A stretch of DNA of 45,380 nucleotides from Guillardia theta CCMP2712 (Eukaryota > Protista > Cryptophyta): assembly GCF_000315625.1 (NCBI RefSeq), contig NW_005434662.1, forward strand, positions 1,041,462 through 1,086,841, given 5' to 3'. This document shows positions 41,852 through 45,380 of this stretch, piece by piece; position 1 is the first letter of the stretch, and each line of letters opens with the position of its first letter. The position numbers and the translations under genes were made by a program. The notes under the pieces were generated by a model. It ran no database searches and was not told the DNA's origin. It worked only from the letters and a program-made list of their open reading frames with translations.

Positions 41852-43612
41852 TCTTCTCAAAAAAGTGCCAAAATTATTCCTGCAAGCACAAATGAGAGGA
41901 AGATGTGCAAAATATTCAGAATTCAGAAGCGAAATAACTGGTACAAATGATGATGAGCTCGTTTTGGTCACAGCATGGTCGTGGTCAAAAGGAATGGTAG
42001 GGAAAAATTGCGTCAGCACACCGCCAAAGCAGGAAGCTGGATAACAGTGAATAGATGCAGGAAGGAAGGGGTAGAGAAATGAAGGAATGCTGGATTGAAA
42101 CTGAGCGGAAGGTAAAGAGGGCAGGAGTGAAGGAAAAGGAAGAGTAAAAAAAGGATGATGTGCAGACAGAATAAAAGACAGCATGGGTGAAGAAGCTCAG
42201 CAGCCCGAATGAACTAAGGGAACAGGAGGGCTGGTGGTCTGAAGAGGGTAGATTAGAAGAAATGCTTCATCTCAGCAGGAAGATGTCAGGGTTGCATGCA
42301 TCTACATGCATGTGAAACGATCTATACTCGCTCTCAATAGCTCAAGGGAATCACAGGATGGAATTAGAGTCGTGTTCCGTCAGAAGATGTAAGAGCTTGT
42401 GATGATCTTAAGGAGGAAGAGGCTTGAAAGGAACCAGGAGGCAGAAAACAGGAAAGCAGAGGTAGATCGAGGAGAAAGCGATGGGAAAGAAAGTTGCAGG
42501 CGGAGAGCAGGACAGCTGAGGTAGGAGAGCTAGCTCTGGAGCATCCATGTAAGTGACCTAGGGGTCAAGCGAGCAAGGAACGACGTGGGGGAGAAACAGC
42601 AGGATTGCGAGGGTGAAGGTAGGAGGGGTCATACAAGCCTAACGAACTCATAGGGGTAGGTAGATCAGGCCGTGACCGACAGAATTAAAACCTCCACTTA
42701 TTGAATTCACTACCCCCATAGTGGGCAAATAAAGAAACTTGTTTCAGGAGCATAGGGTGGGGTGGTGCATCAGAACAGTAAAGGCAACCATCATTGCAGT
42801 GCCCATCTGTGATCACGTGACCAGTCACGGCGCACTTGATAAAAAAAAGACCCACCAGTCTGGTAATTGTAACTTTCAGTTTGAGTAAAAGAGTATGGAT
42901 ATCTTTACTCAAAGTTAAAGATCAGTACCCAGATAGAGAGATAAGAATACAGATTGATTATAGCGCCCATACCCGATCCACCGCAATGAGCCTGGGCATA
43001 ATTATGGGTGCCTGTTTGAATCCAAAGCGGCGATAGGTTTAGGTTTAGGGTCACCCGGTTGTACTCCCAGCCTAGTACGAGGACAATCACAGGAGAGTAC
43101 TCGAACGCCTCTTTTTTTATTAGACTAGGATGTCTATGCGAGAGCCGATAAGCGGCTGGTTGGGGACCCCTCAGTTTACTACCGACCGTCATCGCACTGA
43201 CCGGGCCCGATGTTCCGGGCCCGGCCCTTCAAGTCCCGACTGGCACTGCACCGGGCCCAAACCTGCCGCTGTATCGGAGATCATGCCAATCATTGAACTC
43301 GGAACTTACGGAATACACGCCGCGGGGCGAGCGCTCAGTAGGCTGGAGGCCAGTGTGACATATTCACCTAACGCGGACGGGCCAGACTGAGTCCTGGACA
43401 TCAAGTTTCCGGCGACCGTCACGGCGTCGGACCGTACTCGGTCACGGGCCTCGCTGTATGTCCGATCAGTGGCAAGAAGCTCGGATAAATTGAACTTAAA
43501 AAGGGTTTCAAGTTTAGGGTCAGGCTCCTCGCTGTACTACCGCCGGCCCACGGTCCGATCGGACAAGAAGCTCCGACTCGTCCGATCGGAGTGTCAGGTC
43601 TAAACATTTTTG

Positions 43613-43630
43613 AAACCCTAAACCCTAAAC
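43613..43630 (-). repeat. Short telomere-type repeat in the C-rich orientation (aaaccctaaaccctaaac)
   Basis: Read directly. Confidence 0.7.
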
Positions 43631-43865
43631 TTGAAAGGGCCTAAACCAGGCTCGGAACTAAGGACTACGGAAACAAAAGCATAGCGTTGCCTTTCTCAAT
43701 TGACCTTGGAGCTCTAAAACGTTTCGCGGTGAGGGTGGAAGATTCAAATCCACGCATACCACGAGAAATTGTACTCAAGAAGACCCTACCCCTGAAAAAG
43801 TCCTGCTTGGCTCTTCGTGATTTGAATTCAGACCACGGTCGAAAGACCCACCCCGCCCCCACATG

Positions 43866-43942
43866 AGGGTTTAGGGTTTAGGGTTTAGGGTTTAGGGTTT
43901 TAGGGTTTAGGGTTTAGGGTTTAGGGTTTAGGGTTTAGGGTT
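43866..43942 (+). repeat. Interstitial telomeric array (TTTAGGG) x about 11, one TTTTAGGG variant
   Basis: Read directly. Confidence 0.97.
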
Positions 43943-44212
43943 CAAGGTAAGGAGAGAAGGTAGGAGGCGACCGAAAGCCAAGGTGAGGAGAGGCAACTCT
44001 CCTGACTGAGGCTGAGGAAGCCAAGAGAACACAGCAGAAGTAGAGAGTAGAAAGACGCCTCAGAAGCAGGGTTCGCATTGTAGGCCGTGTACTCCCAGTG
44101 CTCGAGCGCCTCTTTAGACTAGGATCAAATTGCATAAGCCCACAACGAGGCCAAGCAACATTCTAGCATTCTAATAAACTCACATAATAATAATAATAAT
44201 AATAATAATAAT
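43943..44212 (+). mobile_element. Probable 5'-truncated non-LTR retrotransposon 3' end with (ATA)10 tail, inserted in telomeric repeats
   Basis: 270-bp unique segment between two TTTAGGG arrays, with AATAAA at 44173-44178 and an (ATA)10 tail (44184-44213) fused directly to AGGGTTT. Confidence 0.6.
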
Positions 44213-44299
44213 AGGGTTTAGGGTTTAGGGTTTAGGGTTTAGGGTTTAGGGTTTAGGGTTTAGGGTTTAGGGTTTAGGGTTTAGGGTTTAGGGTTTAGG
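44213..44299 (+). repeat. Interstitial telomeric array (TTTAGGG) x about 12
   Basis: Read directly. Confidence 0.97.
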
Positions 44300-44407
44300 C
44301 GCCGTTATTTCCGGCAGCATGGCTCCTTGCCAGGTGTAGGGGAAGCCGCCAGGGCGCCAAGGAAGCTGCAAGCGAGAGGTTTGTTTACTTCAAATAGCTT
44401 TCTAAGT

Positions 44408-45380
44408 ATGGTTCTTCAGTATGATGAAAATGTTCGCAACCTGCTGTATCGGAGATCATGCCAATACACGCAGAGCGGACTTGTGGATGCCTCTGTCCTC
44501 GAAGCTGATCTCGTCGAGAGGGTGAAGAGCTTCGCGAAGCGTTATCCGCACAGCAGGACAGCCCAGGCTTGCAAGGCTGTGGAGGGATGCACCCCCGACG
44601 CTATCGCAGAAGCCATCCGCTCGACATGTCAGCAGGCACGACGTGAGCTTCTGCAAGAAGCGATGGCTGGATGGAGTGACGCATCCAGAGAGTGGTTTAT
44701 GCAGCAGATTGAAGAAGCCAAGAAGGAGAAGGTCGAGACATACACCGCCTCAGCAGGCAACGAGGTGACTTCCTTCATCTCCATGACTCTCCTGGGCATC
44801 TCCTCGGTGTATGTCAACCATGAAGAAAAGCTGAAGAAGAAATTTGAAGAGATCGGACTGATCGTAGACTCAGTGCAAGAGAGTAAAGCAATCATGTGGA
44901 AGGCTCCGTATAGACCCGAGATAGCGAGTGCTGAGGAGATCCCGGTGACTGTTTCCTTCCTCCGCAATGCACAAGCGGAGAAGCTCTGGCAGGGAAGAGA
45001 GGACTTCGCGATCGATGGTCGCAAGTTCACAGCTGTACATGTGAGCATCGTGCACGATCGATCTTTCAAGATTCGAGCCAAGAGAGGACCCTGGGGCAAA
45101 GGGGGCAGCTTGGCAGAGCTGACCCACCTGTTAACCTTGGGCGGCATGACAACGGCTGAGATAGCTGCCGTCTATCGCTATCAGCTGCTGCGCCAGTCCC
45201 TTGCAGCGGTCCAACTCCAGCCGCTGGCAGGCATGCTGGTCGCTGGGGCGCCAGGACAGCAAGTCCACAAAGGCTTAGGTCAGAAAGGCTTCGTCGCTGT
45301 AGGGGCCAACGTCATCTGGAGACAGAGGGAGGTGGAGTGGATCGTCTCCTCGAGCTGCCCAGAGGCGAATGATACAGCAG
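44408..45380 (+). CDS. Intronless ORF (at least 324 aa, runs off the window) with an RRM-like domain; probable ORF1 of a telomere-associated LINE
   Basis: Not in the supplied ORF track because it has no stop in the window. MVLQYDENVRNLLYRRSCQ...; RRM-like pattern MTLLGI / EEKLKKKFEEIGLIVDSV / VTVSFLRNAQAEKL / FAIDGRKFTAVHV. Starts 108 bp after the telomeric array. Confidence 0.7.
   Translation, partial: MVLQYDENVRNLLYRRSCQYTQSGLVDASVLEADLVERVKSFAKRYPHSRTAQACKAVEGCTPDAIAEAIRSTCQQARRELLQEAMAGWSDASREWFMQQIEEAKKEKVETYTASAGNEVTSFISMTLLGISSVYVNHEEKLKKKFEEIGLIVDSVQESKAIMWKAPYRPEIASAEEIPVTVSFLRNAQAEKLWQGREDFAIDGRKFTAVHVSIVHDRSFKIRAKRGPWGKGGSLAELTHLLTLGGMTTAEIAAVYRYQLLRQSLAAVQLQPLAGMLVAGAPGQQVHKGLGQKGFVAVGANVIWRQREVEWIVSSSCPEANDTA

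Follow-up and report, generated by a model that had tools for sequence, protein, structure and literature searches.

The end of a contig of the cryptophyte alga Guillardia theta CCMP2712 is very probably a chromosome end that bears an array of TTTAGGG telomere repeats interrupted, in a single orientation, by retrotransposons without long terminal repeats (non-LTR elements) whose insertions are confined to the telomere repeat; we put the probability of this reading at about 0.88. The window analysed here, 45,380 nucleotides in length, corresponds to positions 1041462–1086841 of contig C12 (NW_005434662.1), which terminates at 1086841. Since window and contig end on the same base, there is no sequence rightward of it to read, and the element was followed in its other copies in the G. 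theta CCMP2712 assembly (87.1 Mb, 669 contigs). According to the same reading, the element of the window, hereafter family A, is a Gag-only member of the group that occupies these arrays.

The distal array of the window (Table 1) starts with a telomere tract at 43866–43942, which contains one TTTTAGGG variant unit and separates the telomeric array from chromosome-internal DNA. It is followed by a short element piece, by a second telomere tract that represents the target DNA between two insertions, and by the leader and open reading frame (ORF) of another copy. The frame starting at the ATG at 44408 remained open for 324 codons up to the last window base, where the contig end cuts the ORF. The leader contained one CGCCGTTATTT(T/C)CGGCAG monomer, of which other copies had from 1 to more than 30. 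An earlier sequence-only reading of positions 43866–45380 had reported this layout and interpreted it as a telomere-specific, SART-like retroelement; all of its features and coordinates were recovered from the sequence, from the tandem-repeat program TRF and by translation, with the short piece measuring 271 bp on re-reading. The junctions were also as it had described them: GGGTT/CAAGG (slash, break point) on the 5′ side of the truncated piece and ...AATA/GGGTTT on the 3′ side, the latter break point being ambiguous by up to 2 nt because the TA that closes the tail could equally belong to the telomere unit.

Both segments of the window recurred many times in the assembly. The 241-bp core of the short piece had at least 40 genomic matches at 97–100% identity, and the best 40 matches of the leader plus ORF (1081 bp) showed 99–100% identity and lay on 33 contigs. 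Given this recurrence and the same-phase TTTAGGG borders of nearly all sampled copies, the pattern in the window is far beyond chance.

Complete family A copies were about 2.7 kb long and had TTTAGGG on both sides, as in the 2705-bp copy at L066:1390-4094. Each consisted of 5′ untranslated region (UTR) monomers, a 715-amino acid (aa) ORF (L066:1528-3675), a 3′ UTR, AATAAA and an (ATA)n tail. The 5′ UTR was a variable number of approximately 20-bp monomers (AGGCGCCGTTATTTTCGGC), and the 3′ UTR comprised three 76-bp tandem units, one of which is kept in the truncated copy of the window. The short piece aligned to positions 2464–2705 of the full copy at 97.9% identity, with its 5′ junction at position 2295. 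Since it matched the 3′ part of the element only, it is a 5′-truncated copy, and the ORF segment distal to it is the start of another copy, in agreement with the sequence-only reading, which had proposed comparing the 3′ end of the element with positions 43943–44212. Truncated family A copies began at positions 1701, 2295 and 2540 of the 2705 bp, with the 3′ end intact in each. This combination of a constant 3′ end with variable 5′ truncation is a sign of target-primed reverse transcription.

The enzyme-encoding ORF (an APE-type or restriction-like endonuclease, REL, together with reverse transcriptase, RT) that had been expected downstream in a full-length copy was absent. No other long sense ORF was present in the full 2.7-kb copy, which encodes neither RT nor endonuclease, and a Pfam search with the 715-aa ORF returned no family and a single chance-level HEAT match. 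Family A is therefore non-autonomous; the RT and endonuclease that define an autonomous long interspersed nuclear element (LINE) were found only in a 10.8-kb partner described below. An open frame of at least 709 codons was kept in 21 of the 28 copies in which the whole ORF region was readable. Copies were compared pairwise, and the median identity between the 18 intact 715-aa ORFs was 99.4%. In the annotation, ORF1 copies of these elements account for about 40 gene models under the name "hypothetical protein GUITHDRAFT_*".

All of the best 40 family A 5′ matches were located within 30 kb of a contig end with their 3′ end outward, 21 as minus-strand copies at contig starts and 19 as plus-strand copies at contig ends. 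This pairing of strand and end means that the sense strand is always the G-rich strand and that the 3′ tail points toward the terminus. The co-orientation noted in the sequence-only reading thus holds for these copies as well, as in SART1, which is co-oriented with the G strand and inserted between T and A of TTAGG (PMC7265360). Junctions were counted in the loci that were read, which provided 52 informative 3′ ends and 55 telomere-to-element junctions. In 43 of the 52 3′ ends, a simple trinucleotide tail of 2–11 units was followed directly by GGGTTTAGGG or a close variant, and in 39 of these 43 the final letters of the tail were TA. The upstream junctions ended in TTTAGG (25/55), TTTAG (11/55) or TTTAGGG (10/55), together 46 of the 55; the telomere tract was followed by the head of a full-length family A copy at 36 junctions, by a truncated A copy at four and by the heads of other families at the rest. 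Together, these results show insertion at one position and in one orientation, as is characteristic of non-LTR elements specific for telomeric repeats.

Telomere tracts between elements comprised 2–22 units (median, 5.7), and arrays reached seven consecutive family A copies (C225), with mixed arrays present on C15. Some A copies were truncated at the 3′ side: at C82:388432 (L047), C29:716788 (L064) and C73:632 (L048), copies cut within the ORF or 5′ UTR ran into 10–27 TTTAGGG units. These are best read as ends that eroded and were then healed by telomerase. One and the same junction, in which (TTTAGGG)7.4 leads into T9 and then AGCCGTTATTTTCGG (AGCCGTT...), was found at C184:90 (L042), C225:62149 (L066) and C289:2638 (L022). 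Of 22 contig ends checked, 20 stopped in an element or its 5′ repeats and none of those 20 in telomere repeats, and N gaps were located within the telomeric arrays at C15:1023161-1032015 (L061-L062) and C225:53522-53621. Because of these gaps and of contig ends that lie inside elements, the reference assembly under-represents the arrays.

An autonomous candidate was found in the same arrays. Family B is a 10.8-kb element (C15:1035719-1046530; L063, L068) whose 5′ end consists of about 30 tandem 20-bp units and whose 703-aa ORF1 product is 29% identical to the family A ORF product over 697 aa (E = 8e-81). Its ORF1 ends with a TAA, after which, 10 nt on and in frame, the ATG of ORF2 follows (TAA AAC CGA ATC ATG, L063:3489-3503), a layout that suggests termination-reinitiation or readthrough. 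ORF2 encodes about 2,500 aa, with the frame open for 2482–2504 codons in four copies, and in Pfam searches matched Exo_endo_phos (E = 4.8e-8; APE) and RVT_1 (E = 3.8e-35) in one frame. For all 13 of the strongest RVT_1 matches in the genome the nearest contig end was no more than 16 kb away, and all but one of them were oriented outward. In a second RT group (101–108 bits) this distance was mostly below 25 kb, and weaker RT families were mostly internal. Family A is therefore HeT-A-like: it is ORF1-only, and a telomeric element that does bear an RT has a homologous ORF1.

The 3′ ends in the arrays were sorted into four types, corresponding to families A, B, C and D, of which C and D are known from their 3′ parts only. 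Family A, the element of the window, and family C are ORF1-only, with (ATA)n and (ACT)n tails, respectively; the C ORF is 52–55% identical to that of A and corresponds to 716-aa proteins found at 57–59% identity in the protein search. The autonomous family B ends in (ACT)n, and family D, which is of the autonomous type and has an ORF2 C-terminus 57% identical to that of B, ends in (ATA)n. The 3′ box TCTAGCATTCTAATAAA is common to A and B, and two motifs recur in all four families: a TTAGAC box some 80 nt before the end, and TCTAATAAA, which 5–6 nt separate from the tail. By its tail, A goes with D and C with B, which suggests which enzyme might move which rider.

Next, we considered the clade of the partner. 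The alignment of the endonuclease domain kept the QNxNG, LQE, GDFNA and KLD motifs, and the endonuclease profile matched L1-EN (E = 1e-12) and ExoIII (1e-6) in the PDB, whereas neither the TRAS1 nor the R1Bm endonuclease was retrieved there even at E <= 10. In addition, the genomic tails are (ATA)n or (ACT)n and not poly(A), and Pfam detected no CCHC zinc knuckle in the ORF1 of A or B. On these endonuclease, tail and ORF1 features, membership of the R1 clade (SART/TRAS) was rejected. The B RT was about equally distant from L1 ORF2p and R2 (approximately 1e-19), and none of the comparisons made placed the partner in the I clade, so that the affinity to SART or to I-clade LINEs suggested by the sequence-only reading found no support. 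That interpretation was right in kind and wrong in two details, the enzymes and the clade, and is thus partly supported.

Domain order points in another direction. Cryptophyte Dualen LINEs carry a C48 peptidase, APE, RT, RNase H, CCHC and a restriction-like endonuclease (Lescot et al. 2016; PMC5029228); they were rebuilt from transcriptomes, with no insertion sites known and no telomere link reported (PMC5029228). In the N-terminal part of B ORF2 (aa 148–260; L063:3933-4271), a weak Ulp1/C48 peptidase match was detected at E = 0.004, below the Pfam cut-off. The C-terminus contained, at the level of motifs, CPWC-x8-H-x4-C followed by IPDG-x12-E-x-AR..KFQEKE (the PD spacing can also be given as PD-x13-E..K), with a zf-RVT match at E = 0.001 that was likewise below the Pfam cut-off. 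The PD..E..K segment was kept between B and D, and its PD..E part was also present in a metagenome relative with an APE-RT-RNaseH architecture. The ORF2 C-terminus had no sequence match in the PDB, and RNase H was not detected in B either by Pfam or by BLAST against the RNase H part of the relative P0051. A word-based homologue search for APE plus RT proteins found two and an exhaustive HMMER search 24,209; since the HMMER matches were mostly unnamed metagenome ORFs of 2,000–5,500 aa, their names gave no clade label. Family B shares with cryptophyte Dualen elements the algal group, a giant ORF and clear APE and RT domains, and may further resemble them in its weak C48 match and, at the level of motifs, in CxxC..H..C and PD..E..K; it differs from them in its separate ORF1 and in the lack of a detected RNase H. 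By domain order, membership of the Dualen group is likely but not proven.

For the ORF1 protein, the protein search returned homologues only from G. theta, Hanusia phi and one row labelled Heterocapsa arctica. The Hanusia phi homologue is a transcriptome protein with 37% identity. The Heterocapsa arctica transcriptome protein was 100% identical to the G. theta ORF over 461 aa and, because of this identity, most likely represents cross-contamination of that transcriptome with G. theta RNA. No ORF1 relative was confirmed in the metagenome scan. The sequence-only reading had seen an RNA-recognition motif (RRM)-like fold in this ORF. The full-length model was poor, with a predicted local distance difference test score (pLDDT) of 53, although its best Foldseek matches were nonetheless multi-RRM proteins. 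A model of aa 112–262 reached a pLDDT of 72 and displayed a beta-alpha-beta-beta-alpha-beta core. All of its 50 best VIA-align matches among 48,161 chains were RRM domains, with a root-mean-square deviation of 3–4 Å over about 80 residues and Z values of just 5.6–6.6, a range that the tool rates as common; Foldseek matches of the same model had E values of 0.05 or higher. No sequence-level RRM match was obtained with Pfam, and a feature search of the ESM Atlas gave no usable hit. An RRM-like domain in the predicted ORF1 protein is therefore plausible but not established: the best VIA-align matches of the domain model are all RRMs, but the scores are low and sequence searches do not support it.

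Family A is transcribed. In one raw run with the same species label, 4698 RNA-seq reads mapped to family A, almost all of them on the sense strand. Poly(A) was added after L066:4086, which lies inside the ATA tail and 17 nt past the AATAAA. In addition, 31 reads had a poly(A) loose end after L066:2021, equivalent to window position 44901 and downstream of an AGTAAA. The read depth was 526 upstream of this internal site and 351 at the true 3′ end, so that many transcripts may end prematurely. Family A was also present, at 0.62–0.78 of its words, in independent public runs from seven studies, and junction-spanning contigs were found in other runs; in run X1, for example, telomere letters stood between positions 2078 and 1394.

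G. theta probably also has telomerase. A Telomerase_RBD match (51 bits, above cut-off) at C21:562211-562372 on the minus strand identified a candidate telomerase reverse transcriptase (TERT) gene. One TAG was found inside this match and may reflect an intron.

These observations can be combined into a mechanism in which family A probably borrows the enzymes of a 10.8-kb relative in the same arrays. Sense RNA of family A would be made and polyadenylated within the ATA tail, and the ORF1 protein would bind it. This RNA would then be copied in trans by the ORF2 protein that an autonomous array member encodes, a Dualen-like relative with the same TCTAATAAA box and a trinucleotide tail. Since the sense strand is the G strand, the first DNA strand must be primed by a C-strand 3′ end, which implies that an endonuclease cuts within double-stranded telomere DNA, as in SART1 insertion, and excludes priming by the G overhang, which would correspond to the opposite orientation seen in HeT-A and MoTeR (PMC7367193). 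The enzyme would nick the C-rich strand within CCC/T/A/AA. If the nick is read as T/AGGG on the top strand, it coincides with the position used by SART1, between T and A (PMC7265360). Because the RNA is polyadenylated and the genomic copies lack an A-run, priming appears to start on the UA-rich repeat: the freed 3′ end would prime on the UA-rich tail and not on poly(A), possibly with a ...CCCTA 3′ end pairing with UA, and slippage would give the variable number of tail units. A similar priming on a tail repeat has been proposed for the Drosophila I factor. The second strand would be joined after TTTAG or TTTAGG, leaving the 2–4-bp target duplication to which the upstream junctions point. Finally, telomerase would re-extend the ends and heal eroded copies, and recombination would also copy array segments.

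Several points weigh against this picture of telomere-specific retrotransposition. Copies on C72, C46 and C154 lie 20–96 kb from a contig end, and those on C176 and C321 are oriented inward; the C72 copy, the one exception that was read, is still flanked by TTTAGGG. Because the T9 junction is the same on three contigs, part of the copy number reflects duplication of array segments or assembly redundancy and not transposition. The contigs stop inside the arrays, and true chromosome termini were not seen. The ratio of nonsynonymous to synonymous differences per site (pN/pS) among ORF copies was 0.50 when pooled, which is only a mild sign of constraint, with a median pairwise value of 0.18. A search for conserved RNA structure in the 3′ region that the families share gave nothing beyond a GGCC hairpin of 4 bp, without covariation. 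Moreover, no new insertion was seen, and we infer both trans-mobilisation and the nick position, the exact bond being ambiguous by 2 nt since the tail-final TA also fits the target.

An improbable alternative is that the units form a subtelomeric gene family resembling yeast Y′, amplified at the DNA level by break-induced replication or recombination, with the telomere tracts as leftovers of healed ends and no retrotransposition. Such a process would account for head-to-tail copies that are separated by short telomere tracts and about 99% identical, for the identical junction on three contigs and for telomere-capped 3′-truncated copies. It does not predict a constant 3′ end with AATAAA and a tail of 2–11 units that always meets the telomere repeat in one phase, nor 5′-truncated copies that start at the unrelated points 1701, 2295 and 2540, nor sense transcripts that end at the tail; furthermore, an APE- and RT-bearing element of the same arrays shares ORF1 and the 3′ box. 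Recombination probably does add copies, but it leaves the tail, truncation, enzyme and transcript features unexplained.

Slightly less probable still is that the 715-aa ORF is a host gene for a telomere protein, either a domesticated ORF1 or its ancestor, within a 2.7-kb unit that is not mobilised through RNA. The many complete copies with at least 709 open codons (21/28), the sense-strand expression of the ORF and the Hanusia phi homologue would fit such a gene, but the architecture of family A (monomeric 5′ UTR, ORF1, 3′ UTR and tail) is that of a LINE minus ORF2, a second ORF1-only family, C, has the same build and a different tail, and the 5′-truncated stubs could not encode the protein. 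A host role would also be compatible with telomere-specific retrotransposition, as HeT-A of Drosophila is both a transposon and a telomere component. We give hardly any credence to an assembly or cloning artefact, in which telomere clones would have been joined chimerically in the Sanger assembly. Contigs ending within elements, the few inward-oriented copies and the N gaps in the arrays are what such joins might leave behind, but one junction phase prevailed over about 50 sites, and both the element and its junctions were recovered from independent runs, as described above. Telomere-specific retrotransposition thus remains the reading that best fits the combined evidence.

Telomere-specific retrotransposons are textbook elements in insects (SART/TRAS and HeT-A/TART) and are known in a fungus (MoTeR). 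Functionally, the closest systems to that of G. theta are SART1 for site and orientation, HeT-A with TAHRE for the Gag-only rider, and MoTeR1/2 for the pairing of autonomous and non-autonomous elements. Like SART1 and TRAS1 of Bombyx mori (R1 clade), the G. theta elements occupy a fixed position in the telomere repeat, form head-to-tail arrays and depend on an APE-type endonuclease in a host that keeps its repeats. Unlike them, family A lacks its own RT and endonuclease, the tail is (ATA)n or (ACT)n instead of poly(A), and ORF1 lacks CCHC knuckles, whereas the partner B has an L1-EN-like endonuclease and a 2,500-aa ORF2 with an additional, putative CCHC and PD..E..K module. Because of these differences in enzyme, tail and ORF1, the likeness to SART/TRAS is convergent and not a matter of shared descent.

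The HeT-A/TART/TAHRE system of Drosophila is similar in that the abundant HeT-A is Gag-only, lacks RT and has a Gag homologous to that of the RT-bearing TAHRE, and in that several families share chromosome ends head to tail. In Drosophila, it is the very end of the chromosome to which telomeric elements attach, their 3′ end pointing to the centromere, and telomerase repeats are not known there. In G. theta, by contrast, the 3′ tail points to the terminus, insertion is into the internal TTTAGGG duplex and there is a candidate TERT gene; HeT-A-like end addition with the 3′ end toward the centromere was not found in family A. MoTeR1 and MoTeR2 of Magnaporthe oryzae reside within telomerase repeats, with half to more than 20 units between copies and truncated terminal copies healed by telomerase (PMC7367193). 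Both systems combine autonomous and non-autonomous elements that share termini and stand head to tail in telomerase-made repeats. However, MoTeRs have only a REL-type endonuclease and their 5′ ends point toward the chromosome end, the opposite of the orientation seen here, and MoTeR2 has no ORF1 homologue, whereas family A keeps a full ORF1.

Among algae, Zepp of Chlorella and Coccomyxa is a LINE that accumulates at a chromosome end; it belongs to the L1 clade, occurs in green algae, has poly(A) tails and is self-nesting. Zepp is not known to insert at a fixed position of the telomere repeat. In a full-text search, no publication was found that connects targeting of telomere repeats with Guillardia, cryptophytes or Dualen elements; Repbase and the genome paper of Curtis et al. 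2012 were outside its scope, and prior annotation there is possible. The statement in the sequence-only reading that no such family was described in this lineage therefore stands for the telomere association, within the papers that could be searched, but not for the LINEs as such, since cryptophyte Dualen LINEs had already been described (PMC5029228).

The G. theta arrays show the same solution in a cryptophyte alga, with a fixed site, head-to-tail arrays, a Gag-only rider alongside an enzyme-bearing relative, and coexistence with telomerase, built from a different LINE lineage that probably carries two endonuclease modules. They offer an independent case for studying how telomere-repeat specificity evolves, how cuts are divided between nucleases and whether such elements help or harm chromosome ends. 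There is also a practical side, in the ORF1 gene models noted above and in the many contig ends of the reference assembly that break inside arrays. A wider and rather doubtful possibility is that G. theta has composite telomeres of independent origin, built by telomerase together with at least four dedicated families, two Dualen-like autonomous elements and two Gag-only riders with matching tails, in which the APE would nick the C strand to prime, the restriction-like nuclease would cut the G strand and the Gag-only elements would take part in end protection, a role that HeT-A has acquired in Drosophila. If true, retrotransposon telomeres would have arisen independently in a protist that has kept its telomerase.

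Table 1. Features of the distal array in the window (window coordinates)
Feature	Position	Strand	Evidence
Proximal telomere tract, (AGGGTTT)10.9, about 11 TTTAGGG units	43866–43942	+	TRF, 10.9 copies, 97% match; direct reading
271-bp piece, 5′-truncated family A copy	43943–44213	+	Alignment to full copy L066:1390-4094
AATAAA within the 271-bp piece	44173–44178	+	
(ATA)10 tail of the 271-bp piece	44184–44213	+	
Second telomere tract, (TTTAGGG)12.6	44212–44299 (from 44214 excluding tail)	+	TRF, 12.6 copies, 100% match
108-bp leader, 5′ UTR of second family A copy	44300–44407	+	98.7% to full copy, position 28 onward
First 324 codons of the family A 715-aa ORF (ORF1/Gag-like)	44408–45380	+	ATG at 44408; translation
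Predicted RRM-like domain, ORF aa 123–215	44774–45052	+	Domain model, beta-alpha-beta-beta-alpha-beta topology
Internal premature polyadenylation site, AGTAAA, cleavage near 44901	44883–44901 (= L066:2003-2021)	+	31 poly(A) RNA reads

Proximal to the array, the approximately 190 bp directly adjoining the first telomere tract (window 43680–43865) represent a dispersed repeat, of which at least 20 further copies (91–99% identity) occupy internal positions of many contigs. It consists of two arms, which are direct here and inverted relative to each other elsewhere. ARAGORN detected no tRNA in this repeat, though a GGTTCAAATCC-like stretch is present. Small relics of the telomeric elements were also present on the proximal side of the array: codons 12–19 of the family A ORF are matched exactly over 23 nt at 43268–43290, and the family B 3′ UTR is matched over 31 nt with 90% identity at 43649–43679. 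An inverted (CCCTAAA)2 was found at 43612–43630, within a GC-rich palindromic block.

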